Below, in pieces: positions 16,388-63,155 of a DNA stretch of 64,000 nucleotides. The stretch lies in assembly GCF_035084215.1 (NCBI RefSeq), contig NC_090351.1, positions 33,728,001 to 33,792,000 of the forward strand, read 5' to 3'. The DNA is from Heptranchias perlo (taxonomy: Eukaryota). Each line of letters begins with the position of its first letter. The first letter of the stretch is position 1. A program made the translations under genes and the position numbers. The notes below the pieces were generated by a model. The model had not been told where the DNA came from. It made no database searches and worked only from the letters and a program-made list of their open reading frames with translations.

Positions 16388-16705
16388 CTAAAAAGTAATG
16401 GTAGCATAAGTTGCCTGTTCAGAGTCCTGTGGATTATCAAATGATGGTTTTTCTCTATTTTTCTTTGGAGGTTGGCTTTGAATCTGCACAGCAGCGTAGG
16501 TGACACTGTCCTTGTTGTTAATTGAACATTTTGCCACCTCAACGCTCTGTGCTGGTGATTTCTTTTGAATCTGCACTTCTGCATATGTGATTTCATTTTC
16601 ATCATTTTTCAACTGGGCAGTACCCTTGGTGAGCATTTCTACTGAGCTTCTTCGAATACGCTGCACATTTGCATAGACTATGCTTTCTTCTGTTGCTGCC
16701 AATTG
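16388..16705 (-). CDS. Gene A exon 7, ITIM-bearing cytoplasmic tail
   Basis: Acceptor tttttgttttag; ORF with IVYANV, ITYAEV, VTYAAV (consensus [ILVS]xYxx[ILV]) and C-terminal ATYATITF*. Confidence 0.88.
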   Translation of the reverse strand, partial: QLAATEESIVYANVQRIRRSSVEMLTKGTAQLKNDENEITYAEVQIQKKSPAQSVEVAKCSINNKDSVTYAAVQIQSQPPKKNREKPSFDNPQDSEQATYATITF

Positions 16706-19700
16706 CTAAAACAAAAAGTACAAGATCCAATTTATTTCTGATTAACTTGAATAGCGATTTGTGCTGTTACGATGTGAAATCTTGCTCTAGATCATTACAA
16801 ATCAGTTAACAGTAAGCTTTTTAATTTTTCAAAGAGTATGATACCGCCTTACATATCACCATCTCATAGGTGAAGCAGTCGTGATCCTAATCAATATTAA
16901 CTATATTTACAACAGCACCTTGCATTTATATAGCACCTTCAACATAGTAAAACGTCCCAAGACGCTTCACAGGAGTGTAATCAGACAAAAATTGATATCG
17001 AGCCAAAGAGCGAAACATTAGGACAGGTGATCAAAAGCTTTTAAGATTTTAAAGCAAAAAGATTTTAAGGCGCATCTTCGAGGAGGAGCGAAGTGGAGAG
17101 GGAATTCCAGAGCTTAAGCCTAGATGGCTGAAGGCACAGCCGCCAATGGTGGGGTTAAGGGAATGGGGGATACAAAAGGCCAGAGTTGGAGGAACACAGA
17201 GTTTTGAAGAGTTGTAGGGCTGGAGGAGGTTAAGATGTTAAAATAATGTCGGTGCAACTTCCTGGCCCAAAATCCTAATTTCCTGTTTCAAAATTTTTGA
17301 GTAATGCTTTTATATCAACATTTCAAGTCAACAATTGGAAATTCCCTATTTCCCACTGTCAACGTTGGGCTGTCATGTTCCAAGCCATATTTTGACCTGA
17401 ACCCTGCTCTTGAAGTACCTTGAGCAATGCCAACTGAGGTTACTAGTTTAAAAAATATTTTAAAACTTTGAGGCTTCACCCTTATGGGTCACAAGGTTCT
17501 CAACAGTCTAAGTAATGTGCTGTTTGTCTCACAAAGGAAAACAAAACTCAGTATTTAGCTCCCTGTTTGGGATAGTGTAGCATGTCTGTTGTGTTGTAGG
17601 TTATGTGGAGTGTTATAGAAGAAGTTCAAGTCTAGAAATGCTACTTTGTTCAGTCATGTGTATTCTCCAAAATAAACCATCTTTGTGATTTTACATCGAC
17701 GCTTCAGGGAGATGAGGTCAATCAGTCCCCCTAACAGAAGATTGGAGAAGCCCAACATCCAGATCAATAAACAAGAGGGGCTCATTGTTGCATAAGAACA
17801 TAAGAAATAGGAGCAGGAGAAGGCCATACAGCTCATCGAGCCTGCTGCATCATTCAATCAGATCATGGCTGATCTACGACTTCAACTCCACTTTCCCGCC
17901 CGATCCCCATATCCCTTGATTCCCCTAGAGTCCAAAAATCTATCGATCTCAGCCTTGAATATATTCAATGACTCAACATCCACAGCCCTCTGGGGTAGAG
18001 AATTTCAAAAGTTCACAACCCTTTGCATGAAGAAATTCCTCCTCATTTCAGTCTTGAATGGCCGACCCCTTATCCTGCGACTATGCTCCCTAGTTCTAGA
18101 CTCTCCAGCCAGGGGGAACAATCTCTCAGCATCTACTCTGTCAAGCCCCATCATAATCTTATATGTTTCAATGAGATCACCTCTCATTCTTCTAAACTCC
18201 AGAGAGCATTGGCCCATTCTACTCAACCTCTCTTCATAGGAAAACCCTTTTATCCCAGGAATTAATCTAGTGAACATTCGTTGCACCGCCTCCAAGGCAA
18301 GAATATCCTTCCTTAGATAAGGAGGTCTCACTAAAGCCCTGTACAACTGTAGTAAGACTTCCTTACTGTTGTACTCCAACCCCCTTGCAATGAAGGCCAA
18401 CATGCCATTTGCTTTCCTAACTTTTTGTGTTACGTTGTCATACATCTAGACGCTGCATAGCCAAAGTAAACTCCAAATTGTAAAGGATGCAGTTCCACTA
18501 TTGGGAGAGACTGGTGATGCTAACATGAGGGAATATCTATGGCAGACCAGAAATTTGCAACGTTTTCACTGGTATAGTACAGTCTTTGGAAAAGAGGAGA
18601 CAGATGACGAAATTGAGATTTTTAAGATTATGAAGCTAATTGCCAATATCGACCCAGTCAAATTATTCACTATTGCAAAAGGTTCAAATACTAGGGATGT
18701 CATGTTGAAAATGAATAAGGTAGCAAGTCAGGTCAAACTTTCTGCACTCAATGGAGTTGTTGAAAATATTACTAGGAAAGACTAGTGATAAATAGATTGA
18801 AAAAAACAATTAGATGTATTTTGGAGGGGGAAAGGATTGACAGATATAGTGAGAAAGTAGGTAGTTGAGGTCAACCTATGAGAACGGAACAGATGGGCTG
18901 GCTGGGCCTGAGGGCCTTTTCCTGTTATTAAAAGTTCTTTTCTAATTTTGCGTTAGTACTTGAGAATGTAGAATGAGAAACGTCATCAAATCCAAAGACC
19001 GGGTTACACAATTAACAAAGTCTCACTTCTAACCTATGAGTCAAGGCCAATCTCCCTTTGTGCCCGTCAGTAATGATATTAAAGATTGGAGCCAATCCAA
19101 GGATATCCAATTTTGCGAATATTATTCAGAGAATTCATATTTAATATTCTTACCTGAGTATCATTAAGAGTGTTGTCTCCTCCATTGTTTGTATCTGAAA
19201 AAATACAATGTTACTGTTAAAAGAGCTATAACAGGAATGGTTAATACTTTTAAAATGTCCAAACTGAGCACATGTTCCAGCGTGCATAACTGTACATTCA
19301 TGTGAACCTCATCTGAAATTTTAAATTTGAGATCGGTAGATTTTTGCTAGCCAAGGGTATTAAGGGATATGGAGCCAAGGCGGGTGGATGGGGTTAGGAT
19401 ACAGATCAACCATGATCTCATTGAATGGCAGAATAGGCTTGAGGGGCTGAGTGGCCTACTTCTGTTCCTATGTTCCTATCTGCATTGCACCGACAATTCC
19501 CCTACATAGAGCGAAAAATTGATCTGCTCATTATACGTAATATTCAGAATGGAGGTAACTTTCAGCTTCACTGTCTGACAGAGCAGATCACCCCGTCCAT
19601 TGCTTCCTACGAGGCGCTCTGTCAGATTATCGGCCAGGGGGTGAAGATGAAAATTACCCCCCATGTGTTTAGGGTTTTGCGACACAATTCTTCCCTGAAA

Positions 19701-22700
19701 ATGAGCTCCTGATCTGATGTGCCATCAGTGGGAGGCCAAACAGTTCATCACTGGGAGAAATCAAAGAGATTGTCACCTAATGAGTCTCAGTCCCTGAAGC
19801 AACTGGCTCAGAAGCAGCATTGGTGGCAGAAAACCCATCCACCTTGTTGGACCATGAATAGCATTTTGTTGCAAAGGACCATGGCTGTTTGTGGCAGCTC
19901 TTTGCTGGAGCAATCCAAAACTAGTACTACTGCCCTGCTCTATCTTCATTGGTTTGCATCTCCCTCTGCTTCAAATCTTAATCCAATTTTCCCTTCAAAA
20001 ATGCAATGGTCTCCCTGTGACAAAGCAATTCAACAATCCTCTGAATAATAAAACTTCTCCTCACTCTCTTGGTAATAATTTTAAATTGATGCCTCCTCAC
20101 CAGTGACTCAGCAGAACAAAATAATTTTTCCCTATTCACTCGATCAGAACTGTTCATGACTTTAAAAACCTCCGTTAAACGAAAAGGGGAAGGGAAGAAA
20201 CTATGAAGTAACTGAGGAAAAAAAGGGAAAAAGTAACTAATTTTTGTTAATAACGTCTAATTTGAAGGAGCAAGGATGATTGTAAACTTGTGTGATAAAC
20301 ATGAGGACCAGATTTAATAAATCAACAACTTTAAACACCCGTCTCCTGATGAAAAAGTTAGGGGATGGCTTCGACCAGAGGCCTGCTGAAATTGTACGCT
20401 CACTGGAAGTTAAGAGATGTGAAGCACTGGTCAATTTGACGAAACCCTTCTGTTATTGCACCATCTGTGGCGAGAAATGCAACATCTGTTCACACAACCG
20501 CTTCCTCTTGAACTGACAAGCAGCTTCAAGATTGATTTGCCTTCAAGAAGGCAAGGATATTAAGGGTTACAGAACCAAGACGGGCAGATAGGGTTAATAT
20601 ACAGATCAGCCACAATCTAATTGAATGGCGGAACGGGCTAGAGGGGCTGAACAGCCTACTCCTGTTCCTGTGTTCCTATGATTTCTTCAGATTTCAAAAC
20701 AGTAACAATAGGTGAAAAATTAGAAGGTTATTGGTTTTATCAGATGTTATAAAGTTCTTGTGATGTTATCTCTGCTTTAATTGACAAACTGGAACATCCC
20801 AGCCAGTACTTGTCATCTTTAGGGCTCAGCCTTTGGAATTTCACTTCTGGATTTAGCTTCAGATGTCAAAGCCCAACACATCAGGTTTCCTGCAGGATTG
20901 GCTTCAGACAATCAATCAAACTTGAACTAATGTTCGAATCAACATCTAATTTTTCAGAGTTGGTATCACAAGGAAATTTAGATCAGCAATTATTGCTGAC
21001 AGGGATTTGGTTCACATGCCTTATGCACTCATACTGAAAGATCACTGACTGAAAAATTTCTCCTCCTATGACTAGGGGAAGGACTGGCTTGGTATTTAAA
21101 CACATCTAATTATTAAAAAAAATTACTCTTACAACATACAGTCCCAAAGAGAATCCAGCAACCACTTGAGTAAAAAGGAAACATTCCAATATTGGTCATC
21201 TGACTCCGTAACTAATTCTCTTAAAGAGGAAATATCGGTCCTGTATTTGACTGTAATTTATTACAATTGGGTCGAATCAGAAAAATTTAGCTCATTAAAT
21301 CCTCACAACTTTCAATTACAACAGACAAGTCCCAAAAGCTCAGCCTCACAGTTGAAAGACCAAGGCCCATATAAATCTCACTTCTACCCAATCACTGTGT
21401 GTCATACACCTCTATCATCCTAAAGCCATGTTGACATTTGCTTCCTGAAGAGCTCAGGGGAATATTTGCTGTTTTCTAGTTACAGTAACAACTTAATTAT
21501 TCTTCCATGTGTAATACATCTAGACTAGATTGTGTGGAACGCTGCAATCACAGGTGTTTGTTGTGTTGGCTAGGGGCTGCAGAAGGTAACCTGAGATGTC
21601 AGCTGCTGATACACAGGCAGGAACGACTTTTGAACTAAAGTAACCTGAGTTCTGTCCTGGCCTCAGCTGGCTGGAACCGGTTTGAATTAACCAAGTTTTG
21701 TGAAAGACAAAGGAAACGTGATAAGACACAAGTCCTTATTTTGAAAAGGATTAATGAGGTAATGCTACCTAAGTCCTTGGGACAGAGCCAATGAGGAGAA
21801 GACCCAGGCAAAAAGCGAGCAGGCCTAAACCAAAGGGAGAGAGACAGCACAGCTTGAAGAGATAAGATTCGGAATAAGAATGAAGGATCTGGGGCGTGGA
21901 GTCAGAGCGAAGACTCCGGAGACCAACCATCGCAGAAGTGGAAGACCCTACGTCAGGGACATAGAGATGACGTCGAAAGAGAGAGAGAACGGAATGCCTG
22001 GCCAGCGTCAGCTCTCCTTTTCGGGTATTATCCTTTATATTCTGTGACCACTCAGGGAGTGTCAGAGAAACCTAGTGTGTGTGCGTTTAGATCTTAGTTT
22101 GGGTATAAGACTATAACCTGGTGTAAATTGCATGTCTATATCTAACCAGACGTATAACCAAATGTATATGATCTAACGGCGTGAATAAAGTGAATTGAGA
22201 GTTAAGAGAGAATTGACTCTTCTCCTCTGTGTACTAAGCCAATAACCGTAACCGGTGACCTCCGGTCAACAGTTGATTACAACAAACTATGTTCTCTTAA
22301 TATTCTGCAGTAAACTATTGACATATAATGAAATGATTAAAGAAAAATAGAAACTCACCCTTGTTTTTTTGCTTCAGGTACAAAAGTAGACAAACAGCAA
22401 GCAAAACGATAAGGCCCCCCAGCACACCGAGCACAATGTAAATCAAACTGTGGTATGGAGAATAGGAAAAGGTCAGCTGGTTCTCAATTGATTCTTAGCT
22501 ATTTGTTTAAAGAAAGAAAGACTTGCATTTATATAGTGTCTTTCATGACCTCAGGACGTCCCAAAGCTCTTTACAGCCAATGAAGTACTTCTGAAGTATA
22601 GTCACTGTTGCAATGTACCAGCCAATTTGCGCACAGCACGATCCCACAAACTGAAATGTGATAATGACCAGATAATCTTTACTTTTATAGTGATGTTGGT

Positions 22701-25700
22701 TAAGGTATAAATATTGGGCTGGACACCAGGGAAAATTCCCCTGCAATTTTTCCAAATAGTGCTGTGGGATCTTTTATGCCCACCTGAGAGGGCAGTCGGG
22801 GCCTCGGTTTAACATCTCATCCGAAAGGCAGCGCTGCACTCCCTCTGTACCGCGCTGGAGTGTCAGGCTAGATTTTGTGCTCAAGTCTCTGGAATGGGAC
22901 TTGAACCCACAACCTTGATGACTCAGAGGTGAGAGTGTGACCACTGAGCCATGCTTAATTCATGGTAGGTTTCACACATTAAAAACTGAACAGAAAAGTA
23001 CCTGATGACATCTGAAAAAGTAGAAGCAACAACAGTTTCATGCACTGCAGAGTTCTTATATTCAGCTGATGTTCATAGTCAAATTTATATAACAGTACAG
23101 AAACAGAGATATGTTCAAAAGTAAAATGCACAGATTTTCAATATTTTTCACATAATTAACATCTACCTGATAAAAATAAATATACTGCATGTGCTAGAAA
23201 TCTGGAAGATAAACAAAAGTTGCTGGAAGCACATGGCAGGTCCGTCAGTGTCTGTGGGGAGAACAGATATGTCTAGGTTCGGTTGTGAACCAGAATTCTG
23301 AAGCAGGGTCTCCACCTGAACCATAAGCTTGTCTGTTTTCTCCACAGGTGCTGACTGACCTGCTGTGAGTTTCCAGCAGTCTCTGCTTTTGTTTGACATT
23401 TAGCTGGCATTTTCTCCTTATCACCACATTGTAACTTCAAAGGCCCAATTCCTTCACGTTTACATTAGACGACAATCTCTGCTGCTTATTACCTGCAGCT
23501 CGGGCTAATAATATGGAAATGAGAAGTGAATTATGTTAAATGGGTATTTACATCACATACACATTGGGTGGAATATCTGCCCACAGAATATGAATTGGAG
23601 AGAACCTCCTCCAAACCCAATGGCACCACTTAAAATGAGTCCCCTGCCATCAACATCCATGGGATCACCATTGACCAGAAACATAACTGGATCAGCCATG
23701 CCAACACTGTGGCTGCAAAAGCAGGGCAGAGGCTGGGTACTCAGATTGAGTGGCTCACCCCCTGACCCCCTGACCTTATGACCCCTTGACCCGTCAAAGC
23801 CTCTCCATCATCTGCAGTACTCAAGTTGGGAGCGTGATGGAAAACTCACCTTGGACAGGTGCAGCTGTAACAACACTCAGAGGTTCACCACTATTTAAGA
23901 CAAAGTAGTCCTCTTGGCCAGTGTTCCTGCCAGTGGGCTCAATATCCACCCCCTCCACCACTGGAGCACCGTGCCTGCAGTACGTACTATGAATAGGACA
24001 CACTGCAGCAACGCCCACATCCTGAGAATCTATGAAAGAAAACTGGGCACGTTTACTTAAAATCACCTTTTAGCCCAATGGCCTCTGCCATTAAAGAGGG
24101 CAAGACAAACACTGTCATGAGAACACCACCTCCTCCAAGTTACACACCATTCTGGCTTGGATATATACTGTTGTTCCTTCATTCTTGTTAGGTCAAAATC
24201 ACGGACTGTCTTACTTAACATCATTGTGGGAACATCATCAGCAGATGAAGAATAAGGCCGAGCACCACTTTCTCAGGGCAACTAGTGACAGGCAATAATG
24301 TAACCTTGCCAGCATCACCCACCTTCCAAGGACAAATTTTAGGAAAAGAAACTTCCTGCACTTGTAGTAACTGACGCTGAGAATTTGACCAAAGTGCCAA
24401 GATGTTGCTCACTAGTGATATCAATTGATGTGCAGATGTACTGCTGTAATCCCTCCCTTTCACAAGCAGAAATACAACTTTTCTGTCAGTGCCACACCAG
24501 AACAGATAGGGACGAGGCACACTGCCATTGCTGGGGTTTGGCAAGTACGTCTCATCTCACGCCATGAGGTTAGGTTAGCGGTAAAGTAATGAAGGTGAAT
24601 AATGCAAACAGCACCACCTGAGGGGTGGCAAAATGGAGGTGCTTACTTCTTATTCTTATTCTCCACCAACAAAAATAGCACCTTTGTTCGGAAGCTAACA
24701 CAACAGCATGATGTAAATCCAGCCACCATTTCCATTATGATGAGTTATAGCCTGGAATAGTAAATGTTTGTGAAGCCTTGTGCCAAATTTCTTAAAGAAC
24801 ATTTATTCTCTCAGATGGAAACAGTGCCAATCAAAACACAAGCAATGAGAACATTGTACCTTTTGCTGGCAGATGTGGATTCTGAAGATGTGGTTGGATT
24901 ACCAGTGGAATTGATATTTTTACTTGTGGAACATGGAGTTGTTGGTGATACTGTTGAAAAAACTTCACAAGTATATACAGGTCCTATTGAGGCAAGGGAA
25001 TAAAGTTTAGATTCACCTGATTTTCACTTGTAGTCAACCTAGAGAACACTATTGTTAAATGGAACCTCAGTGCTTGAGTAAAATCCTGGTTGGTATATTG
25101 GATTTGGATGCTTTCATTTCTGTGTAATTTCCCCTCTCTGGTAGCAAGGAGAGATGCTGCTAACACCTGGCAGCGGCCCATTTTTAGTGATATTTCAGTT
25201 ACTTTCCCATATCCAAGTGTTTGCGCTACAGAATTACTATTGGGACAGTTAAAGGTCTCGGGTTGGTGGGACTACAAACCAGATATTCCCTTTTTTGCCC
25301 CACGCAAACATAAAGGAAAGTTAGAGCCAGGGAATGATCTGTGCCACCACCGGAAAGTGTATTCCTGGGCGCCTAGCAACCACGATGCTGCCCTGGAGCG
25401 ATGTCCTCAGTGGAATAGGAACATCAGCAGTGCATTGAGCACATCTGGAAATATTAGACCAATAATTACTGTTGTCGATATTAGTAGACAAGCAGTTAAA
25501 ATTCGTAAGGCGTTCCTCGTTTAAAAGAATGTTTCATTCAAAATAGCAGATAAAGGAATGTCACACGCACACATTAAACAGTCGCCTGCTAATATTGACA
25601 ACGGTCAATTCTAGCCTCTTGGGGTCGGTTTCCTGAGCTTGCCAAGTGATGGGAAACCTCAGCCACCGGGAGTGGATATCGCAAATCAGGGACAGGCTCG

Positions 25701-28700
25701 CAAACAGATGCAATAGATATTAGTTTTAAAAATTCAGTTCCCATATTGTTTGTTTAAAGTAACACTTACCAATGCTGCTGATTTGAGCCACATAACTGCA
25801 GTTTTTCTCTGATCTGTTCCAGACTGACACATCAACCATTTCACTGGATTTTCCTCCATTATTATTTGAGGCTCTGCAGTAATATTGATGATGATCTTGG
25901 GTGAAGGAAGAACATTGTAGATCCAGTTTATCAGATTCAGAGATCGTTAAATCTTCAGACGTGGCCTTTTTATACCATGTGTACCGAATGGGAAGGGACC
26001 CTTGGACAGACTCACAGGAGACTGACACTGAGCCCCCAAAACATGAGGCATTTGCTGGTGATAAAAATCGAAGTACAGGAACAGACACAGATTCTGTGGG
26101 AAAGAAACAAACATTCAGACACTGACTGACTCTGCTTCTTGCACTGGATCCAAACTATCCCTGATCTTTAATGGGATGAGAGAGATTAAATAGCCTTCAA
26201 AAGCACCTGAAAGAAGAGGAACAATTGTGCAAGTTTTTGCTTTTTTTGAAAAACAGCAGCATAATTGATCCAGATGGAAATAATCTTCTCATCATTTTTG
26301 CTTTGATGAAACCCATCATGAATTTGCCAGGTTGGAGCAGTCTATGGGGTAGAAATTGGGATGTGTTTTGTTCCAATTCCGGGCGTAAAATGGTGCAACG
26401 TATACCAATTGCTGGGCGTGAAGTCCTGTGCCCGATTTGCATTGGGGCATGCCCACTGCCCTATTGGTCGACTCTGTTTTTAGGCGTCCCTAGTGGTCGC
26501 CTGAAAGCAGCGTTGCATTAATTTAAAAATGCAAATAAGGGTCCTGGGCATGTTTTAGGAACCTTCTGCAAAATTTTTGAGAAACTAGGCAGAGCGTACA
26601 CCGTGAATGTTCTGACGAGCTTACCCAGTTCTACAGCGGCCTAACCAGAGTTCCTTGAAGAGACCCATTGAGATCACTGAAGAATCGCGACTGCGCTCGG
26701 TCCCCCAGCGTTTTCCACCGGTGTCCAAGCAGGACGTTCCTGAGGGCCACTGGTGAATAGACAGCAGGCTCAAATTTGATCCCCAATGTTGGAAGTAGCC
26801 AGCAGCTCGCCTCTATTATCAAAATGAGGCCAATTTCAGATGAGCCTCAGGCCTCTGGCTTCTTGGGGCGCGCTTTCAGCCTGTCGCTTATTTTGGGTCC
26901 AGAAATGAGCCCAAAAGAATTTCCAACCCTATTGTTTTCAGGTGGGGGTTTGGTCGAATGTTGAATGCATTTCCAGGAATGGCCTGACCCAGGTCCAGTT
27001 TGTACCAGAACTCCCTCATATGGGAATTCTGCAACCAACATCGAAAAATCAAATGCTTTCCAATGTTCATTTTACTTCTGAGACAAAACCAGAATAAGCT
27101 CTCCTGTAACTCAGCCAGGCCCTGCCATTTTGGAACCTCACCAGCACATCTACATCTCCATGTCTCTCCATCCTGCGAGCAGCCTGAACTACCATGTCTA
27201 ATATCAGAACATAGCAGGGCTCCAGATCAGGAGAGCAGTAATGATACTGGGGATGTGTCAATTTGAAAATCAGGGCTAACAATTTCTCTCAGTGGTAGGT
27301 TACCAGCCTCCAATGCTGTTTAATTGTTTGACACTCGAACATGAGCTAGTTGGAGAAAGTCCGAGAAACCACAGCAGAATATGAGTGCAAAAAACTGGAG
27401 ATTTCTACACATGTTCTGTGGCTTTAGACAGGGAGAGTAATTATGATTGGTTTCAGCGAACTGCAGCTGAAAAGCAACCCTTTATCTCAGTTTTATTGGA
27501 GTAGCCAAAGCACAAAGGTGACCAGCTTGACACTTTCAATGAGAATTGTCAGGTCTTCAGTGCTGTTGCGGCCACACCCTGTTCTCAGAAATTGATTAGG
27601 ACAAAATTTGCTTTGTGACTGGACAGTCTCTCTTTGAAATGTTACTGCTTGCCAGCCTGTCCCTCAGCACTTCCCTACTCACCCACCCAGATCCATTGAA
27701 AAATCAATAGGAGGTGTAGAGGATGTAGAAGATTGTATTTAGTATTTGATCCTTCAGGAGGTTTGCTTAGGAGGAAGATAATGGGCCATAATTTGCTGTG
27801 GCAGAGCATCCAACGGTGTTTGCCGTTGGTTAGACTTGCCCTTGCTCGTTTAGGTTTCAAATTGTTTGCAGGTAAGTTACTGAAAGTGCGAGTTGATAAC
27901 ATCGCAGCGAGGGAAACAGGGCATCTGGGACCTGAGTGGACAGAGCAAGAAACCGTGTATCTCCTTCACCAGTCAGATTCAAGGATTTTGAAATAATCAA
28001 TGAAAGGATTGAGAAGGAAGTGTAAATGAGAATGGATTGAATGTCCAATCAGGTACAGAAAGAGAAATAAAGAGAGGGAAAGAAGGATTGGATGAAGAGA
28101 GAAAGAAAAAGGAAATGTACATTTTTAAAATTTCCAACTACAATTAAAACCTGAAGGATTGAAACTCCACACTTGTAAGTTTTCAGTGCCAAAGAGGTTG
28201 CTTGGCAGTAAATAACACTTATCACGTTGTTAAAAGGGTACTCAGACTTGAAATGACTTGACTCAACTTACTGTGGAGAGTTTAATTTGTATCTACCGTG
28301 CAAATACAGCAACTTCATGCCGTTCAATGTATTTCAATGGTGCGGCAGACAGCAAGATGCCCTTTTTGTGAAGCTAAGGGCAGAACGGTGCAACTTGGAC
28401 AGCAACTTTTGGATTTCTGTGTTAACCAGGCATCTGCCCCTCGCCTGAATTTGCTGCACCATTTGCGTGTAAATAATGGCGATCGCCATTAGTCTCACCG
28501 CTATTTTGACAGCAAAATCTGGCCCAACGTGACAACATGAATAAAGAGGCTTCTTTTACCATCAAGAGAGTGATCTAGCTTTTCAATTTTAAGTTTAGCT
28601 CGCTTGTAAAGTTGAACTGTATTGTGCTGAACTAAGTATCTGGTTGATTCTGTATGCCTCCCATCATATCAGGAAACCTACAAAAATCTGTTACGCTCAT

Positions 28701-31574
28701 GTGGATTGATTCCATTTTTAGTGTTTTCTAGGTATTTATCCCATTAATGACTACTTGCTTCTTACTGCTTTTGTTATTGTCTTTCTATCAGTTTTAGCCT
28801 GAATGTAAACATCTGACAGTGTGAAATTTGATACAGTTCAGAGACAGGAAGATGTGTTGAGCATCCATGTGAGGTCTGGTGTAATACACTGCAGTTAAAG
28901 TAACTGTTGGTCCCATAATACGTGAAATTTTTGGTTGGATAGTTGGACAGGCCACGAATTGCGTGTGAGCAACACGAGTCGTGTTTCCAGACCTCTGCCC
29001 ACTTCCTGGAAGACTCTGCACTGCTGCGGAGCTTCGGGAAATCAGTGCTGTATTTTTCTTCCCAGATGAAACATTGAACAGACGTTTTAGTAGTGTATAA
29101 TAAAGTATATCACTGAGAAAAGTACCGTAAGATATTTGTAGCCATAAGTTAAACCTTGGATCGATGCCAGATCGTTCAATACCACAGCTGTACCATCCGC
29201 TATCTCCCAAGCGAAGATCCGTCATAGTAACAACGAATATTCCTTCTCTCTTGTTATCTGTGATTGACATTCTTCCTCGCTGTCCATCTTGCTCACTTGT
29301 TTTTACTAAAATTGAACAATCAACAGTCCAGCCATGACACCAATATTTCACATATGACCGGTACGTATGTTTGTCATAGTGACAGTCTATTGTGATCGCT
29401 CTTCCCACAACTCCATTTACATTTTTTTTTGCCCACAATGCACCTGAAACTGAGGAGACAGCACTTCAGAAATTGAACAGGAAGTAACTGCTAAATACAA
29501 ACAGATACATTTTAATAAGAACTTCCACTGTGTACAGAAGAATCTCTCCACTACGTCCATTAATACAGTTGAATTCCTTGTAGTTTGTGATGAAAGAAAG
29601 AACATTAATTTCGTGCCTTATCACATCCTCACGATGTCCTAAAGCACTTCCCAGCCAGTGAATTACTTTTGAAGTGTAGTCACTATCGTTAAACAAGAAC
29701 AGCAACAACAGCTTGCATTTATATAGCACCTATAACATAGAAACACAAGCGAAGATATAATCAAAAGTAAATGGACATTGAGCTAAGTCAGGAGATATTA
29801 GGAGAGGTGTGTAACAGCTTGGTCAAAGAGGTGGGTTTTAAGGAGGGTCTTAAAGGAGGAGAGGTGGGGGATTTCATACAGGGAATTTCACAATGTAGCG
29901 CCAATGAAGGCAAACCCATTCCCACTAATGGTGGGGCAAATGTAGGGATCGAAGCACAAAAGATCACAGTCAGCGGAAGGGAGATCTCGTGAGGGAGTTG
30001 GTGAGTCGGGCTGAAGGAGGTTACTCAAATAGTGAGGGGCCATTTCATGAAGGAATTTAAACACAAGGATGAAAGTTTGAAGTTTTGAGAGACCGAAAGC
30101 CAATGTAGGTCAGCAAGGACAGGGGTGATAGATGAACGGGACCTGATACGGGCAGCAGAATTTTGGATGCGTTGATGTTTATGGTGGGTGCAAGAGGGGA
30201 GGCAGGCCAGGAGAACATTGGAATAGTTCAATCTGGAGGCAACAAAGACATGGATGTGGGTTTCAGCAGCAGACGGGTGGAAGTAGGCAGACTTTGTAAT
30301 GAACTTGATATCTGCAGGAAAAGTGCTCCAGATTGTCTGTAAGATCAATGAGCAAGACCTCGAGGGTATTAATCACAGGATTATTCCCAGTGCCACATGG
30401 TAATCAGTATAACAATAGTAAGATAAGAGAAGTAATTTTGTGACTGGAGAGATGGTTCAGAAGAAAAGGGTTCATATTCCTGGCACCTTGGGACCAGGTG
30501 TGGAAGAGGAGCATCCTGTAGAGGACGGGAGGAGTTTACTTGAACAGCGCCAAGACCAATGGCCTTGCTGGGAGAGGAACTCATGCTGTGGGCAAAGAGT
30601 TTACTCCCAAATGGCAGGAGGGTGGTTAAAAATAAGCTGAAGAGGCACGAGGAAGAGGACGGAGGGCTGAGGATATAGGATAGATAAAAGAGGGAAATGG
30701 GGAGGGGAAAGAGATCAGATCAGAAAGAGGAAGGTTTGAAAAGAGAAAGATTGCCATAACAGAGGCGTGCTTCAGTTGAATGTTCAAAAAGTATTCTGCA
30801 TAAAATTGGCAAGTTGAGGCACAAATATTTATGGGGAGGTTTGATATAATAGAATTAACAGACTCATGGCTTAGAGTAGGGTGAGACTGGGAGTTTAACA
30901 TTGCTGGTTACAAAATAGATTAGTCCAAAATGGTGGCGGGGAGGCAGTATTAATCAGAAATTCCATTACAGCATTAAATCATAAAGATGATATGGGGCTG
31001 AATCTACTTGGTTAGAGTTAAAGAAGAAGAAGAAAACGGTTCCTTATTAGGAGAGTAATATCGACCAAACAGTGGGCGTCCTCTCCCAGTGAGGAACAGT
31101 TTCACTGACAGAGCCTCGTTAAACAATATTTCATCGGCTGTACTTTAAATAACGAAAACAGTTGCAAATTTGTGACATTTTCTATTTGAGGGATTATTAC
31201 CACTGCAGTCTTCAGTGTATATTGGACTTCAGACTACATTATAAAAGTCACTTTTTTACGGATTAAAACTGGTTGCCTTTGCATTTTGATTGTTGCTTTT
31301 GCAGCTTTTAAAAAAATGAAATGGAACCTTTATTTTCCACTCACAATTAAGAATGCATTTTCGTCTGGCAAATAATACAGTGAAAAAGAGATACAAGACT
31401 ATATGCAAATGTACTTCTGCTGAGTATTTTGTGCCTTTACATTTCTCCAAATATTTAAACATCTCTGCTGTTTAAACCATACACGAGACTTAAACTAACA
31501 CTGATTATCTGAATATCCAGCTCTGGCGGTCACTCACCGGGCAGGGAACAAATGAGAAGAATCAGAATCCGCAT
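16388..31574 (-). CDS. Gene A: inhibitory CD300/pIgR-like (CMRF35-like) Ig receptor, predicted 418 aa, 7 coding exons: 31538-31574, 29126-29449, 25770-26093, 24860-24983, 22359-22447, 19154-19194, 16388-16705
   Basis: All introns are GT-AG with compatible phases (1,1,1,2,1,0), giving an uninterrupted frame. It runs from signal peptide MRILILLICSLPVSGA through V-set Ig, C2-type Ig, S/T stalk and TM LIYIVLGVLGGLIVLLAVCLLLYL-KQKNK to a tail with IVYANV, ITYAEV, VTYAAV, ATYATI. Confidence 0.85.
17790..18420 (-). mobile_element. CR1 LINE 3' fragment in gene A intron 6
   Basis: ORF 18005-18445 matches the CR1 RT C-terminus; cataagaacataagaa tail at ~17791. Confidence 0.85.
19154..19194 (-). CDS. 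Gene A exon 6, short juxtamembrane cytoplasmic exon
   Basis: ttttttcag|ATACAAAC...ACTCAG|gtaaga; 41 nt (DTNNGGDNTLNDTQ) converts phase 1 to phase 0, as the ITIM exon requires. Confidence 0.75.
19551..19662. mobile_element. Tiny MITE
   Basis: GGAGGTAACTTTCAGCTTCAC ... GTGAAGATGAAAATTACCCCC inverted termini. Confidence 0.65.
21533..22271 (+). mobile_element. Probable solo LTR in gene A intron 5
   Basis: TGTGG...CAACA ends, imperfect 4-bp flanks ATTG/GTTG, internal short direct repeats, AATAAA at ~22184. Confidence 0.5.
22359..22447 (-). CDS. Gene A exon 5, uncharged transmembrane exon
   Basis: (S)LIYIVLGVLGGLIVLLAVCLLLYLKQKNK; polypyrimidine acceptor, donor G|gtgagt. Confidence 0.88.
22510..22952 (-). 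mobile_element. Deu-domain SINE copy in gene A intron 4
   Basis: Same family, reverse orientation. Confidence 0.75.
23620..24335 (+). mobile_element. Old degenerate 3' fragment of the same LINE family as 140-3403
   Basis: caccattgaccagaaa...ctgg and tctcagggcaactag...ccttgccagc match the 3' part of copy 1. Confidence 0.7.
24860..24983 (-). CDS. Gene A exon 4, Ser/Thr-rich stalk
   Basis: GPVYTCEVFSTVSPTTPCSTSKNINSTGNPTTSSESTSASK; acceptor after ttcccttgcctcaatag; phase-2 donor AG|gtacaa matches the TM exon phase. Confidence 0.8.
25770..26093 (-). CDS. Gene A exon 3, C2/I-type Ig domain (FcR-like)
   Basis: SVSVPVL...VSVSCESVQGSLPIRYTWY...QYYCRASN; acceptor cccacag, donor G|gtaagt; 324 nt, phase 1-1. 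Confidence 0.9.
26346..28526. mobile_element. Degenerate non-autonomous TIR element(s) in intron 2 (copies at ~43124-45304 and ~60050-62230)
   Basis: GGGGTAGAAATTG ... CAAAATCTGGCCC imperfect inverted ends, resembling the other Harbinger-like repeats here. Confidence 0.45.
29126..29449 (-). CDS. Gene A exon 2, V-set Ig domain of CD300/pIgR type
   Basis: ITIDCHY...KYWC-x6-C...GRMSITD...DSGWYSCGI: canonical Ig Cys pair plus the extra CD300/pIgR-type Cys pair; 324 nt, phase 1-1. Confidence 0.93.
29700..30290 (-). mobile_element. L2 LINE 3' fragment (similar at ~16905-17235, ~32100-32580 and in the duplicated units)
   Basis: Translation AETHIHVFVASRLNYSNVLL...QRIQNSAARI is typical of the L2 ORF2 C-terminus; aacaacagcttgcatttatatagcacc tail. 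Confidence 0.75.
31538..31574 (-). CDS. Gene A exon 1, signal peptide (MRILILLICSLP)
   Basis: ATG at 31574, hydrophobic leader, strong phase-1 donor G|gtgagt; joins in frame to VSGALWA of the V exon. Confidence 0.88.
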
Positions 31575-31720
31575 TGTTTTATTCACAAAGAAGAGATCAG
31601 CACTTGTCGTCAGTCACCCAGCTCTTCGTTCTCATATCTAAATAAATATCTTCATGATGCGAGGAATTTAAATGAGGAAGAAAGTAGCAGGAAGCCAGAT
31701 CGTGAAACCGCAGGAAGCCA
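31575..31720 (-). promoter_or_regulatory. Putative proximal promoter of gene A with clustered ETS/PU.1-like and RUNX-like motifs (matching copy at 48355-48500 for gene B)
   Basis: GAGGAA at 31661 and 31674, CAGGAAG at 31688 and 31711, ACCGCA (TGCGGT) at 31707, all within 150 nt upstream of the ATG. Confidence 0.45.
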
Positions 31721-33593: not shown

Positions 33594-33690
33594 TCGTCTC
33601 CAAAAGATAAGACTCTTCCCCATTGGCAGGGAAAGAAAATTAAAAGCAATTGTATCCTTGAACATTTTTAAGTCGCTCTTTGGATACAAA

Positions 33691-56661: not shown

Positions 56662-59600
56662 TCATCTTGCCACGTTGGCCGACCTGTGGTGATCTGATTC
56701 GTTGAGTAGCTGAAAGTGAAAATATTTAATGCATCAGATTCATTGATATTGAGAAGTGTGCGTTATTTTACATGTCAGTTCTGAACAGAATTCTATCTGA
56801 AACTGTTAACAAGTTGAGGAAAGGCCTGCGATAGACTGGAGCTGTGTTGAGATCACACTCCTCCCTCCCCCATCACCATTGCACGTGTGCTGGGAAAAGG
56901 TGTCAGTTGTGCCCCTTTTGCTGTGACACCATTTTCTCACATTCAACATGGGTTTTTCTGCAACCGTGACGGTGGACAGTTGACATCAGAAAACGGTTGA
57001 CTTTATTAAATATATTTTAGATAGTCCAGTTGAGGTTCCCAGCAACAATAGAATTAGGTCTGTGTCTGAGCACCCTGGTGCTCGACTGGATAAACAAATC
57101 AGAATGGAATCTTTTCTTGACTGTATTAGTACAGCTTGGCTCAGTGGTAGCACTCTCATTTCAGATGTCAAAAGGTTGTGGGTTCAAGTCCCAGTCCAGG
57201 GACTTCAGCACATAATCTAGGCTGGCACTTCAGCACTGTGCTGAGGGAGTGCTCTATTGTCAGATGAAACGTTAATGGAGGGCCCCATCTGTTTGTTCAG
57301 GTGGACAGAAAAGATTCCATGACACTATTTGAAGAAGAGCAAAGGAGTTCTCCCAATATTCTGGCCAAAACAGATTAACCGGTCATTTATCTCATCTGCT
57401 GTGTTTGGGACCTTTCTGTGTGCAAATTGTCTGCCACTTTTGTCTCCATAACAACAGTAACACTTCAAAAGTAACTCATTGGATGTAAAGAGATTGGGAC
57501 ATCTTGAAGATATAAAAGAGTCTATATAAACGCAGGTTCTTTCTTTATTATATCTGTGACAAATATTTTTGAAAGAATTTTTGGAGTGTTTCATACAAAG
57601 TCCTTAATCCTTACCTTAGTTTTTCTCGTACACGTTGTGACCGAAACAGTACAAATCACCAGGAGAGCAAAGAGCACCCAGCGTAGCACACTCCACACAA
57701 TGTAACTGAGCAAAAGGGGAGAAATACAAAATCATTCACAAGAAACGGGATTGCTTTGTGTCTGAAACATTTATCTCCTGTTTACACTGTAATCTTAGTA
57801 TTTTGTATCAATGTAAAGCCGCAGAACCAAGGGACTTTAGCTGGGAAACTAAACTGTTGTTTGACTTATGGAGGAAAGTCAACTTTGTGATCATTAGATA
57901 AAGGCCAAATGAAGCAAAGTTCATTAACATGTCCACAATGTGCAGCTATAAAGGCACGGCACAATTTTATAATTGAGGACTTTATAAAAGTGACTGACCA
58001 TCTGCCTGGGGCCATGTAACAGTGGTAATATGTCTCCTCAGGGATGATCACAATAACATCAACCTGCAACTGCTCATCTGCACCTTCTTTCAGGCAATTG
58101 CTGAGCAGCTGGAAACAGGCAGCCTTCCCGTTCTCTCAGTTTGGAAACAGTGTATAACATGGGCAAACTGAGAAGGTGAAAATGACGGAGAATGCAAATG
58201 CCACTCCAGAATAGTGGAAGGCAAACCAGCATTGCTGGGGTTTGGCAAGTACAACTCATCTCACGCCATGAGATTAGGTTAGCGGTAAAGTAATGAAGGT
58301 GAATAATGCAAACAGCACCACCTGAGGGGTGGCAAAATGGAGGTGCTTACTTCTTATTCTGATTCTCCACCAACAAAAATAGCACCTTTGTTCGGAAGCC
58401 AACACAACAGCATGATGTAAATCCAGCCACCATTTCCATTATGGTGAGTTATAGCCTGGATGAGTAAATGTTTGTGAACCCTTGTGCCAAATTTCTTAAA
58501 GAACATTTATTCTCTCAGATGGAAACAGTGCCAATCAAAACACCAGCAATGAGAACATTGTACCTTTTGCTGGCAGATGTGGAACCTGAAGATGTGGTTC
58601 GATTTTCAGTGGAATTGATATTTTTACTTGTGGAACATGGAGTTGTTGGTGACACTTTTGAATAAACTTCACATTCATATACAAGTCCTATTGAGGCAAG
58701 GGAATAAAGTTTAGATTCACCTGATTTTCACTTGTGGTCAACCTAGAGAACACTATTGTTAAAAGGAACCTCAGTACTTGAGTAAAATCCTGGTTGGTAT
58801 ATTGGATTTGGATGCTTTCATTTCTGTGTAATTTCCCCTCTCTGATAGCAAGGAGAGATGCTGCTAACACCTGGCAGCGGCCCATTTTTAGTGATATTTC
58901 AGTTATTTCCCCATATCCGAGTGTTTGCATTACAGAATTACTATTGGGACAGTTAAAGATCTCGGGTTGGTGGGTCTACAAACCAGATATTCCCTTTTTT
59001 GCCCCACGCAAACGTAAAGGAAAGTTAGAGCCAGGGAATGATCTCTGCCACCACCGGAAAGTGTATTCCTGGGCGCCTAGCAACCGCGATGCTGCCCTGG
59101 AGCGATGTCCTCAGTGGAATAGGAACATCAGCAGTGCATTGAGCTCATCGGGAAATATTAGACCAATAATTACTGTTGTCGATATTAGTAGACAAGCAGT
59201 TAAAATTCGTAAGGCATTCCTCGTTTAAAAGAATGTTTCATTCAGAACAGCAGATAAAGGAATGTCACACGCACACATTAAACAGTCGCCTGCTAATACT
59301 GACAACGGTCAATTCTAGCCTTTTGGGGTCAGTTTCCTGAGCTTGCCAAGTGATGGGAAACCTCAGCCACCGGGAGTGGATATCGCATATCAGGGACAGG
59401 CTCGCAAACAGATGCAATAGACATTAGTTTTAAAAATTCAGTTCCCATATTGTTTGTTTAAAGTAACACTTACCAATGCTGCTGATTCGAGCCACATAAC
59501 TGCAGTTTTTCTCTGATCTGTTCCAGACTGACACATCAACCATTTCACTGGATTTTCCTCCATTATTATTTGAGGCTCTGCAGTAATATTGATGATGAAC

Positions 59601-62600
59601 TTGGGTGAAGGAAGAACATTGTAGATCCAGTTTATCAGATTCAGAGATCGTTAAATCTTCAGACGTGGCCTTTTTATACCATGTGTACTGAATGGGAAGG
59701 GACCCTTGGACAGACTCACAGGAGACTGACACTGAGCCCCCAAAACATGAGGCACTTGATGGTGATAAAAATCGAAGTACAGGAACAGACACAGATTCTG
59801 TGGGAAAGAAACAAACATTCAGACACTGACTGACTCTGCTTCTTGCACTGGATCCAAACTATCCCTGATCTTTAATGGGATGAGAGAGATCAAATAGCCT
59901 TCAAAAGCACCTGAAAGAAGAGGAACAATTGTGCAAGTTTTTGCTTTTTTTGAAAAACAGCAGCATAATTGATCCAGATGGAAATAATCTTCTCATCATT
60001 TTTGCTTTGATGAAAACCATCATGAATTTGCCAGGTTGGAGCAGTCTATGGGGTAGAAATTGGGATGTGTTTTGTTCCAATTCCGGGCGTAAAATGGTGC
60101 AACGTATACCAATTGCTGGGCGTGAAGTCCTGTGCCTGATTTGCATTGGGGCATGCCCACTGCCCTATTGGTTGACACTATTTTTAGGCGTCCCTAGTGG
60201 TCGCCTGAAAGCAGCGTTGCATTAATTTAAATATGCAAATAAGGGTCCTGGGCATGTTTTAGGAACCTTCTGCAAAATTTTTGAGAAACTAGGCGGAGCA
60301 TACACCGTGAATGTTCTGACGAGCTTACCCAGCTCTACAGCGGCCTAACCAGAGTTCCTTAAAGAGACCCGTGGAGATCACTGAAGAATCGCGACTGCGC
60401 TCGGTCCCCCATCGTTTTCCACCGGTGTCCAAGCAGGACGTTCCTGAGGGCCGCTGGTGAATAGACAGCAGGCTCAAATTTGATCCCCAATGTTGGAAGT
60501 AGCCAGCAGCTCGCCTCTATTATCAAAATGAGGCCAATTTCAGATGAGCCTCAGGCCTCTGGCTTCTTGGGGCGCGCTTTCAGCCTGTCGCTTATTTTGG
60601 GTCCAGAAATGAGCCCAAAAGAATTTCCAACCCTATTGTTTTCAGGTGGGGGTTTGGTCGAATGTTGAATGCATTTCCAGGAATGGCCTGGCCCAGGTCC
60701 ACTTTGTACCAGAACTCCCTAATATGGGAATTCTGCAACCAACATCGAAAAATCAAATGCTTTCCAATTTTCATTTTACTTCTGAGACAAAACCAGAATA
60801 AGCTTTCCTGTAACTCAGCCAGGCCCTGCCATTTTGGAACCTCACCAGCACATCTACATCTCCATGTCTCTCCATCCTGCGAGCAGCCTGAACTAACATG
60901 TCTAATATCAGAACAGAGCAGGGCTCCAGATCAGGAGAGCAGCAATGATACTGGGGATGTGTCAATTTGAAAATCAGGGCTAACAATTTCTCTCAGTGGT
61001 AGGTTACCAGCCTCCAATGCTGTTTAATTGTTTGACACTCGAACATGAGCTAGTTGGAGAAAGTCTGAGAAACCACAGCAGAATATGAATGCAAAAAACT
61101 GGAGATTTCTACACATGTTCTGTGGCTTTAGACAGGGAGAGTAATTGTGATTGGTTTCAGCGAACTGCAGCTGAAAAGGAACCCTTTATCTCAGTTTTAT
61201 GGGAGTAGCCAAAGCACAAAGGTGACCAGCTTGACACTTTCAATGAGAATTGTCAGGTCTTCAGTGCTGTTGCGGCCACACCCTGTTTTCAGAAACTGAT
61301 TAGGACAAAATTTGCTTTGTGACTGAACAGTCTCTCTTTGAAATGTTACTGCTTGCCGACCTGTCCCTCAGCACTTCCCGACTCACCCACCCAGATCCAT
61401 TGAAAAATCAATAGGAGGTGTAGAGGAGGTAGAAGATTGTATTTAGTATTTGATCCTTCAGGAGGTTTGCTTGGGAGGAAGATAATGGGCCATAATTTGC
61501 TGTGGCAGAGCATCCAACGGTGTCTGCCGTTAGTTAGACTTGCCCTTGCTCGTTTAGGTTTCAAATTGTTTGCGGGTAAGTTACTGAAAGTGCGAGTTGA
61601 TAACATCGCAGCGAGGGAAACAGGGCATCTGGGACCTGAGTGGACAGAGCAAGAAACCGTGTATCTCCTTCACCAGTCAGATTCAAGGATTTTGAAATAA
61701 TCAATGCAAGGATTGAGAAGGAAGTGTAAATGAGAATGGATTGAATGTCCAATCAGGTACAGAAAGAGAAACAAAGAGAGGGAAAGAAGGATTGGATGAA
61801 GAGAGAGAGAAAAAGGAAATGTACATTTTTAAAATCTCCAAATACAATTAAAACCTGAAGGATTGAAACTCCACACTTGTACGTTTTCAGTGCCAAAGAG
61901 GTTGCTTGGCAGTAAATAACACTTATCACGTTGTTAAAAGGGTACTCAGACTTGAAATGACTTGACTCAACTTACTGTGGAGAGTTTAATTTGCATCTAC
62001 CGTGCAAATACAGCAACTTCATGCCGTTCAATGTATTTCAATGGTGCGGCAGACAGCAAGATGCCCTTTTTGTGAAGCTAAGGGCAGAATGGTGCAACTT
62101 GGACAGCAACTTTTGGATTTCTGTGTTTAACCAGGCATCTGCCCCTCGCCTGAATTTGCTGCACCATTTGCGTGTAAATAATGGCGATCGCCATTAGTCT
62201 CACCGCTATTTTGACAGCAAAATCTGGCCCAACGTGACAACATGAATAAAGAGGCTTCTTTTACCATCAAGAGAGTGATCGAGCTTTTCAATTTTAAGTT
62301 TAGCTCGCTTGTAAAGTTGAACTGTATTGTGCTGACCTAAGTATCTGGTTGATTCTGTATGCCTCCCATCAGATCAGGAAACCTACAAAAATCTGTTACG
62401 CTCTTGTGGATTGATTCCATTTTTAGTGTTTTCTAGGTATTTATCCCATTAAAGACTACTTGCTTCTTACTGCTTTTGTTATTGTCTTTCTATTAGTTTT
62501 TGGCCTGAATGTAAACATCTGACAGTGTGAAACTTGATACAGTTCAGAGACAGGAAGATGTGTTGAGCATCCATGTGAGGTCTGGTGTAATACACTGCAG

Positions 62601-63155
62601 TTAAAGTAACTGTTGGTCCCATAATACGTGAAATTTTTGGTTGGATAGTTGGACAGGCCACGAATTGCGTGTGAGCAACACGAGTCGTATTTCCAGACCT
62701 CTGCCCACTTCCTGGAAGACTCTGCACTGCTGCGGAGCCTCGGAAAATCAGTGCTGTATTTTTCTTCCCAGATGAAACATTGAACAGACATTTTAGTCGT
62801 GTATAATAAAGTATATCACTGAGAAAAGTACCGTAAGATATTTGTAGTCGTAAGTTAAACCTTGGATCGATGCCAGATTGTTCAATACCACAGCTGTACC
62901 ATCCTGTATCTCCCGAGCGAAGAGCCTTCATAGTAACAACGAATATTCCTTCTCTCTTGTTATCTGTGATTGACATTCTTCCTCGCTGTCCATCTTGCTC
63001 ACTTGTTTTTACTAAAACTGAACAACTACTAGTCCAGCCATGACACCAGTATTTCACATATGACCAGTACGTATGTTTGTCATAGTGACAGTCTATTGTG
63101 ATCGCTCTTCCCACAACTCCATTTACATTTTTTTTTGCCCACAATGCACCTGAAA
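56662..63155 (-). CDS. Gene C (5'-partial): second activating-type copy; exons 62832-63155, 59474-59797, 58564-58687, 57615-57705, terminal 57017-57085 or 56662-56709
   Basis: Offset 16926 from gene B; V and C2 translations identical to gene B; leader exon expected ~1.3 kb beyond the window end. Confidence 0.8.
57615..57705 (-). CDS. Gene C Arg-containing TM exon
   Basis: Matches 40689-40779. Confidence 0.87.
59474..59797 (-). CDS. Gene C C2-type Ig exon
   Basis: Same protein as gene B C2 exon. Confidence 0.9.
62832..63155 (-). CDS. Gene C V-set Ig exon
   Basis: Same protein as gene B V exon; splice sites intact. Confidence 0.92.

Follow-up and report, generated by a model that had tools for sequence, protein, structure and literature searches.

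We analysed 64,000 nucleotides of the Heptranchias perlo genome (contig NC_090351.1, forward-strand positions 33,728,001 to 33,792,000), here called the window and numbered from its first base. It carries three receptor genes, A, B and C, on its minus strand, and it holds the 3′ end of a tandem array of modular domain immune-type receptor (MDIR) genes. An earlier inspection of the letters, which we call the sequence-only reading, had assigned the DNA to a probable cartilaginous fish. This is borne out: gene A matches a RefSeq protein of H. perlo (Hexanchiformes), XP_067863712.1, exactly. All six peptides quoted in that reading are found on the minus strand where it had placed them. The four tail motifs of A lie at 16664-16681 (IVYANV), 16574-16591 (ITYAEV), 16487-16504 (VTYAAV) and 16397-16414 (ATYATI), and the transmembrane (TM) motif WSVLRW lies at 40752-40769 and again at 57678-57695. 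There are no N runs in the window.

Self-BLAST returned a minus-strand unit of about 16.8-16.9 kb in three tandem copies, 97-99% identical to one another. Positions 24490-37442 match 41273-54228 at 98.0%, 37440-47074 match 54349-64000 at 98.9%, and 24490-30294 match 58199-64000 at 97.0%. Together with a divergence scan, in which inter-copy divergence was a mosaic of 0-5%, these matches delimit three units of about 16.9 kb:

24490-41272, minus strand: first unit
41273-58198, minus strand: second unit
58199 to the window end, minus strand: third unit

A V exon, a C2 exon and a Ser/Thr-rich stalk exon are present in every unit, and the genes are spaced 16.8 kb apart. Homology between A and B/C stops at 24490, about 370 bp downstream of the A stalk exon. 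Past this breakpoint A continues into an uncharged TM exon and a Tyr-rich tail exon, whereas B and C continue into the TM exon that encodes WSVLRW. All modelled introns are GT-AG with consistent phases. Every V and C2 exon has phase 1-1, and they can therefore be strung together in any number without loss of frame.

Gene A has 418 codons in seven coding exons, and every exon translation equals XP_067863712.1 (418 aa, named "uncharacterized protein") exactly. We retrieved this protein with a profile of first-round homologues. The exons of A are as follows, with residue numbers of XP_067863712.1:

31538..31574, minus strand: A leader exon (coding part), MRILILLICSLP plus one base, ATG at 31574, donor G/GTGAGT, located by tblastn of homologues; residues 1-12
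29126..29449, minus strand: A V exon, phase 1-1, matching Pfam V-set (E 7e-12); residues 14-120
25770..26093, minus strand: A C2 exon, phase 1-1, FCRL-like, matching Pfam Ig_2/Ig_3; residues 122-228
24860..24983, minus strand: A stalk exon, phase 1-2, rich in Ser/Thr and bearing a single N-glycosylation sequon; residues 230-269
22359..22447, minus strand: A TM exon, uncharged LIYIVLGVLGGLIVLLAVCLLLYL and then KQKNK, with RNA contigs covering 22359-22449; residues 271-299
19154..19194, minus strand: A cytoplasmic mini exon of 41 nt, (D)TNNGGDNTLNDTQ, from a splice scan and RNA joints; residues 301-313
16388..16705, minus strand: A tail exon with stop (coding 16705-16391, stop 16390-16388), carrying Tyr 324 (IVYANV), 354 (ITYAEV), 383 (VTYAAV) and 413 (ATYATI)

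The four tail tyrosines are spaced 29-30 residues apart, and three of them sit in canonical ITIMs (immunoreceptor tyrosine-based inhibitory motifs). The TM exon ends in phase 1 and the tail exon starts in phase 0; a direct splice between them is ruled out by the frame shift, and an intermediate exon is therefore required. A splice scan ranked 19194-19154, which restores the TM-tail frame, first as this exon, ahead of the confirmation by RNA. An open stretch at 19167-19346 that encodes a TM-looking peptide was considered as an alternative TM and rejected, as it is merely the surroundings of the mini exon. A protein search with the A tail exon alone gave no match, which reflects only the length limit of 58-184 aa.

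The RNA came from four small sequencing runs of one sample, with the tissue unnamed and the label only "RNA?"; we aligned them on 16500-22499. Their contigs show the joints 22359>19194 and 19154>16705, both GT..AG, with three runs contributing between them. One contig of 539 nt holds both joints and extends 71 nt upstream of the A TM exon. Since the contigs are spliced, the "RNA?" runs do contain RNA. The TM, mini and tail exons of A are thus joined exactly as modelled, and the TM and tail that the sequence-only reading had assigned to one gene do belong together, by way of a 41-nt exon that it did not list. The contig match reaches 22449, two bases past the start of the TM exon. Such an overhang is expected if the preceding exon ends in AG, as the stalk exon does.

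Several features of A stand beside this gene model. Its introns hold repeat fragments at 17700-18500 (including an open stretch at 18008-18445), 19300-19500 and 21700-22100, which RNA contigs of 95-99% identity cover at great depth (a summed word depth of as much as about 70,000); what is seen there is expression of dispersed repeat copies, not of the locus. The V exons start with a tandem pair of acceptors 6 nt apart (…CTCAG/TTTCAG/GT…) at 29443-29449, 46223-46229 and 63149-63155. In A the acceptor at 29443, 6 nt downstream, is the one used by RefSeq isoform X2 (416 aa), and the two residues (VS) encoded between the pair are what distinguishes X1 from X2. In sharks the first tail Tyr stands in the sequence Y-A-N (IVYANV), which also agrees with the preference of the Grb2 SH2 domain for pY-x-N. 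Window positions 14726-16263 are filled by a minisatellite whose unit of 23-25 bp is repeated about 63 times. It is C-rich on the plus strand, hence rich in G runs on the sense strand of A, and begins about 125 bp past the A stop codon, in the 3′ untranslated region or flank; the tail RNA contig stops just short of it.

Genes B and C share the architecture of A up to the stalk and differ from it beyond:

48318..48354, minus strand: B leader exon, identical to the A leader, from tblastn of homologues and sequence
45906..46229, minus strand: B V exon, equal to residues 14-120 of RefSeq isoform X3
42548..42871, minus strand: B C2 exon, found in RefSeq isoform X3
41638..41761, minus strand: B stalk exon, sequence model
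40689..40779, minus strand: B Arg-TM exon, (S)YIVWSVLRWVLFALLVICTVSVTTC and then TRKTK, donor AAG/GTAAGG; equal to residues 485-514 of XP_067863711.1
39736..39783, minus strand: B terminal exon, LLNESDHHRSANVAR and stop (coding 39783-39739); equal to XP_067863711.1 residues 515-529
62832..63155, minus strand: C V exon, sequence model
59474..59797, minus strand: C C2 exon, sequence model
58564..58687, minus strand: C stalk exon, sequence model
57615..57705, minus strand: C Arg-TM exon, sequence model
56662..56709, minus strand: C terminal exon and stop (coding 56709-56665), identical to the B terminal exon

Gene B has 315 codons, and neither B nor C has a mini exon. The limits given in the sequence-only reading are exact, 16388 being the final base of the A stop codon and 63155 the first base of the C V exon. 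The leader exons of A and B (ATG at 31574 and 48354) each lie about 2.1 kb upstream of their V exon; that of C is expected near 65280, beyond the window, within which C is incomplete. Up to about 90 nt before the leader ATG, both A (31575-31660) and B (48355-48440) carry two short upstream open reading frames, each running from ATG to stop. The Arg-TM exon of B is homologous to the TMs of Chiloscyllium, Hemiscyllium and skate MDIR5. We found the terminal exon (15 codons, with a good acceptor) through the C-termini of the Chiloscyllium and Hemiscyllium homologues, and an AATAAA follows 90 nt beyond its stop in both genes. The neighbouring H. perlo protein XP_067863711.1 ends in 45 residues equal to the B/C TM and terminal exons; this splice is therefore confirmed in H. 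perlo. A read-through ending (…TRKTK-VRIKDFV-stop) was dropped, given the match of the terminal exon at 39783/56709 to the shark homologues and to the XP_067863711.1 C-terminus. The resulting tail of B and C has 20 residues and no Tyr, and the TM Arg sits seven to eight residues in from the outer face, in the outer third, much as the sequence-only reading had described these two genes. A short acidic motif, [DN]-E-S-[DE], is kept in the tails of Arg-TM forms from sharks to skates (here at 39739-39783 and 56665-56709), which suggests that a cytoplasmic contact or a sorting signal has been conserved in these "tail-less" activating forms.

The existing annotation covers these genes unevenly. RefSeq isoform X3 (XP_067863714.1, 634 aa, named "pIgR-like") consists of the B leader, V and C2 spliced in frame onto the A V-C2-stalk-TM-tail. 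XP_067863711.1 (529 aa) is a V-C2-V-C2-stalk-Arg-TM protein and, with Ig domains that share no more than 77-91% identity with those of B and C, a further paralogue. The B/C stalk exon occurs in none of the 126 proteins that we retrieved for comparison, a result obtained without a search by the joined B/C model, and independent RefSeq models of B and C seem to be missing among them. The sequence-only reading had suggested that the family might be unannotated as such. For A this does not hold, since it is a RefSeq protein, though one called uncharacterized. For B and C the suggestion stands in part: the V and C2 of B are in RefSeq solely inside isoform X3 of the A locus, and no retrieved protein has the B/C stalk.

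We then compared the ectodomains of the three copies, taking that of B from isoform X3. B and C do not differ in their V, C2 and stalk exons. Between A and B/C, 32 of the 772 bases of these exons differ, and A and B are 93% identical in amino acid sequence over 216 V+C2 residues, with 15 differences; with the stalk included, the amino-acid differences between A and B number 22. The proposal of three same-strand genes with near-identical V-C2-stalk ectodomains thus proved accurate. Divergence along the units is uneven. Between A and B it reaches 3-5% near the stalk and V exons, falls to 0.4-1% within the V-C2 intron, and is 0-0.2% across the leader exon and some 1.5 kb upstream of it. B and C show none, apart from a patch of about 2 kb in the V-C2 intron; there they differ by 1.4-2.4%, and B is closer to A than to C. 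Such a mosaic is what duplication and gene conversion, acting repeatedly, leave behind. That the leader and upstream sequences of A and B are nearly identical suggests that the two genes are expressed in the same cells.

The exons of A and B have diverged more than their surroundings, 4.1% as opposed to 1.9% for introns and flanks (Fisher p 3e-4), and the exon differences comprise 27 nonsynonymous and 5 synonymous changes. This suggests, without proving it, selection for difference between the inhibitory and activating ectodomains.

A profile search with first-round homologues gave 128 proteins at E<=1e-10. All 128 are from cartilaginous fish: sharks, rays, skates and chimaera. Their NCBI names vary, from "CMRF35-like molecule" through "pIgR-like" and "Fc receptor-like" to "uncharacterized". 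Two are named members of the family, clearnose skate MDIR2 (E 1e-133) and MDIR5 (E 4e-220). Gene A is similar over its full length to a named MDIR, and the genes in the window share with MDIRs the module types, the presence of both ITIM and charged-TM forms, and membership of a large multigene family in cartilaginous fish. The sequence-only reading had called them a lineage-specific family, and this part has to be given up: they are MDIR genes, A is collinear with skate MDIR2, and both signalling modules are common to sharks, rays and skates.

The ectodomain combines two kinds of domain. The V exons match Pfam V-set (E 7e-12 and 3e-10) and the second exons match Ig_2/Ig_3. Among solved structures, the nearest to the V domain are pIgR (several domains, E about 1e-35 to 1e-39) and CD300f/CLM-1 (E 1e-20), in agreement with the CD300/pIgR-like character proposed for it; further matches are CD300a, NKp44, Fc-mu-R (FAIM3, E 1e-5), TLT-1 and TREM2. 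The nearest to the C2 domain are FCRL5 (six stretches, E 8e-43) and FCRL4 (E 2e-5). By these matches the receptor is a hybrid of a pIgR/CD300-type V and an FcR-like (FCRL-type) C2.

The signalling modules are old. In an alignment of about 20 elasmobranch tails, the four Tyr positions of A are kept in sharks, rays and skates, and the Callorhinchus tail keeps the first two. The first Tyr reads Y-A-D or Y-A-N in stingrays and sawfish and is lost in skates, including MDIR2. The ITIM-type tyrosines that the sequence-only reading noted for A, beside its uncharged TM, are conserved. A pattern match found the Arg-TM module ([YF]-x-x-W-x-V-x-R-W-[VL]-L-F…) in 31 of the 126 proteins; they include MDIR5 and come, again, from sharks, rays and skates. 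The TM Arg is invariant in them, and the module is followed by a short tail with the conserved [DN]-E-S-[DE] motif. Queried with the 31-aa Arg-TM exon, a set of 1.84 billion representatives gave two matches at E<=0.001, both from orectolobiform sharks, the query being too short to reach rays.

The ectodomains group differently. In a maximum-likelihood tree of V+C2, those of A and B are sisters (100/100), and two orectolobiform clades each include both signalling types. Signalling type needs 7-8 changes on this tree, the same as with shuffled labels. Ectodomains thus group by lineage and not by signalling type, which means that ancient signalling modules have repeatedly been re-paired with recently homogenised ectodomains. 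In A, B and C, the recent feature is the near-identity of the ectodomains alone.

These data lead to a reading in which A is an inhibitory and B and C are activating members of a paired set of MDIRs, with a shared, young ectodomain in front of old signalling modules. We consider it about 75% probable. The paired-receptor interpretation itself had been offered before, and it is well supported at the level of sequence, with opposite signalling ends behind near-identical ectodomains. Each unit would give a type I membrane protein with a pIgR/CD300-type V, then an FCRL-type C2, then a glycosylated stalk. Ligand binding by A would bring its tail to Src-family kinases, and the phosphorylated ITIMs, at a spacing suited to tandem SH2 domains, would recruit SHP-1, SHP-2 or SHIP and damp signalling through ITAMs (immunoreceptor tyrosine-based activation motifs). 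In B and C the TM Arg is predicted to pair with an Asp in the TM of an ITAM adaptor from the FcR-gamma/DAP12/CD3-zeta group. Judging from LILRA, PIR-A, OSCAR, NKp46, GPVI and Fc-alpha-RI, a TM Arg at this position would favour an FcR-gamma-like partner. Neighbouring genes would exchange their ectodomain exons, or have them homogenised, through tandem duplication and gene conversion, and the inhibitory and activating forms would as a result see nearly the same ligand. Relatives of the V domain bind lipids (CD300) or polymeric Ig (pIgR, Fc-mu-R).

Several points weigh against this reading. We know of no biochemical evidence for any MDIR. The link from stalk to TM in A is based on the RefSeq model and the 2-nt alignment overhang, not on read letters. 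Isoform X3 joins the V-C2 of B to A, so B may not act solely as a separate gene. The A-B ratio of nonsynonymous to synonymous substitution rates, 1.6, is not significant alone (p 0.5). Finally, cartilaginous fish yielded no FcR-gamma in a 2014 survey (PMC4016189), though the genomes at its disposal were far poorer.

Isoform X3 leads to another view of the array, as one modular transcription system in which upstream V-C2 cassettes are spliced in frame onto downstream units and B and C serve mainly as cassette donors. In such an additive exon-cassette system a single locus would give proteins whose Ig domains number 2, 4 or 6 and whose end is of the inhibitory or of the activating type. X3 has just this form, with B leader, V and C2 ahead of the V-C2-stalk-TM-tail of A; both XP_067863711.1 and skate MDIR5 are V-C2-V-C2 proteins with an Arg-TM, many relatives annotated "pIgR-like" are 450-680 aa long, and the uniform 1-1 phase of the V and C2 exons keeps every concatenation in frame. 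The skate MDIRs of the 2006 study reportedly had one to six Ig domains, with a charged TM in MDIR1 and ITIMs in MDIR2 and MDIR3; a cassette system, if true, would explain such "modular" skate cDNAs. However, X3 is a computed model in which three exons, a poly(A) site and some 8 kb of spacer have to be passed over. A and B have their own ATG leader exons with nearly identical upstream sequence, B and C have their own terminal exon, stop codon and AATAAA, and the difference of about 20% between the two V-C2 pairs of XP_067863711.1 accords with a true gene of four Ig exons located at another place in the array. We regard the cassette system as unlikely, if a serious candidate. The Arg-TM forms could also do without an ITAM adaptor, acting as ligand sinks or decoys, pairing with another partner, or using the acidic motif of the short tail. 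The Arg-TM module has no detectable relatives outside cartilaginous fish, the search of 1.84 billion representatives having returned two matches at E<=0.001, and the [DN]-E-S-[DE] motif kept by sharks, rays and skates is a hint that the tail has its own function; the survey that reported no FcR-gamma in sharks (PMC4016189) points the same way. Yet it is difficult to see why an invariant Arg should persist in the otherwise hydrophobic TM of sharks, rays and skates if it had no charged partner in the membrane. The same arrangement marks adaptor-coupled receptors in LILRA, PIR-A, OSCAR, NKp46, GPVI and Fc-alpha-RI, and we think this alternative rather improbable.

Because B equals C in all coding exons and over long flanking stretches, and their stalk exon is in no retrieved RefSeq protein, B and C might instead be very recent, possibly silent duplicates, or one of them an assembly duplication, which would leave one inhibitory and one activating gene at the real locus. 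This we judge very unlikely: the window is gap-free, the reading frames and splice sites of B and C are intact, and the 1.4-2.4% divergence of B from C in a V-C2 intron stretch of about 2 kb, where A is nearer to B, is a conversion pattern of three copies and not an allelic one. The paired-receptor reading of A, B and C remains the one that we prefer.

Other features of the window lie outside the three genes. The spacers between units (window 32000-36000 and 49000-53000) are GC-rich, up to 59%, with long Pro/Arg/Ser/Gly-rich open stretches that gave no Pfam match and are probably repeat-derived. A long interspersed nuclear element (LINE) with endonuclease (Exo_endo_phos) and reverse-transcriptase open reading frames occupies 5278-8430 on the minus strand. 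An inverted copy, 94% identical and about 2 kb away, lies at 289-3310 on the plus strand, and additional fragments, 88% identical, lie at 10916-12207.

The family is already known, as MDIRs were described in skate in 2006, and A is already in RefSeq; this is not a new kind of system. What we found no earlier description of is the genomic layout, the recent homogenisation of ectodomains as opposed to ancient signalling modules, and an explicit hybrid of pIgR/CD300-type V and FCRL-type C2. Skate MDIRs have been presented as multigene activating and inhibitory receptors related to CD300, TREM/TLT and pIgR (PMC3031540). They have been little followed up since 2006 and are scarcely mentioned in the literature that we searched. 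The window gives a clean genomic picture of the family in a basal shark, in which ancient ITIM and Arg-TM modules stand behind duplicated, converted and probably diversified ectodomain exons. The 2014 survey (PMC4016189) concluded against pIgR-type V and FCRL-type C2 in cartilaginous fish; contrary to this, both are present there and fused. Such hybrids may be the missing Ig (Fc) receptors of cartilaginous fish. A and B, with their 15 differences over V+C2, provide defined constructs with which to study how ligands are bound, which adaptors are used and where Fc-receptor-like recognition originated.

Among known systems, the closest to A is MDIR2 (ABC86796.1, Raja/Rostroraja eglanteria; Cannon et al. 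2006, Immunogenetics 58:362), which is collinear with it from signal peptide to C-terminus (416 and 418 aa, 44% identity over 426 columns, E 7e-120) and has the same order of V, C2, stalk, uncharged TM, short linker and tail with the same Tyr positions. Unlike A, MDIR2 comes from a batoid, is known from cDNA only, and has lost the first tail Tyr; in the literature searched we found no description of its genomic setting or of a pairing with a near-identical activating neighbour. MDIR5 (ABC86800.1) resembles B and C in that it ends with their Arg-TM module (SYISWKVGRWLLFLLLVIW) and a short acidic tail, but it has four Ig domains (V-C2-V-C2) instead of two. Mammalian CD300 (CMRF35-like) proteins share the V with an extra C-C′ disulfide pattern and the division into ITIM and charged-TM members. 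They differ in their single V and lack of an FCRL-type C2, where A, B and C have a second, FCRL-like C2 domain, and in a charged residue that is Lys or Glu and not part of an Arg module. pIgR, Fc-alpha/mu-R and Fc-mu-R give the best solved matches to the V domain, and many relatives carry the NCBI name "pIgR-like". However, pIgR has 2-5 V-like domains in tandem, no C2, and a long transcytosis tail without ITIMs, while the receptors described here are V-C2 with an ITIM tail or an Arg-TM. FCRL4 and FCRL5 match the C2 domain, and FCRLs also bear ITIM tails, yet they consist of FcR-type C2 domains only and lack the N-terminal pIgR/CD300-type V-set domain found here. In organisation, finally, the array resembles KIR, LILR/PIR, SIRP, CD300A/C and the teleost NITR, LITR, PIGRL and DICP clusters, in which linked genes with highly similar ectodomains end in either ITIMs or a charged TM and are likewise kept alike by duplication and conversion; A and B are linked in the same way, 16.8 kb apart and 93% identical over V+C2. 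Those clusters differ in Ig domain types and TM module, which makes the likeness one of analogy and not of family membership: the logic is that of KIR, LILR or SIRP pairs, about 400 million years removed.

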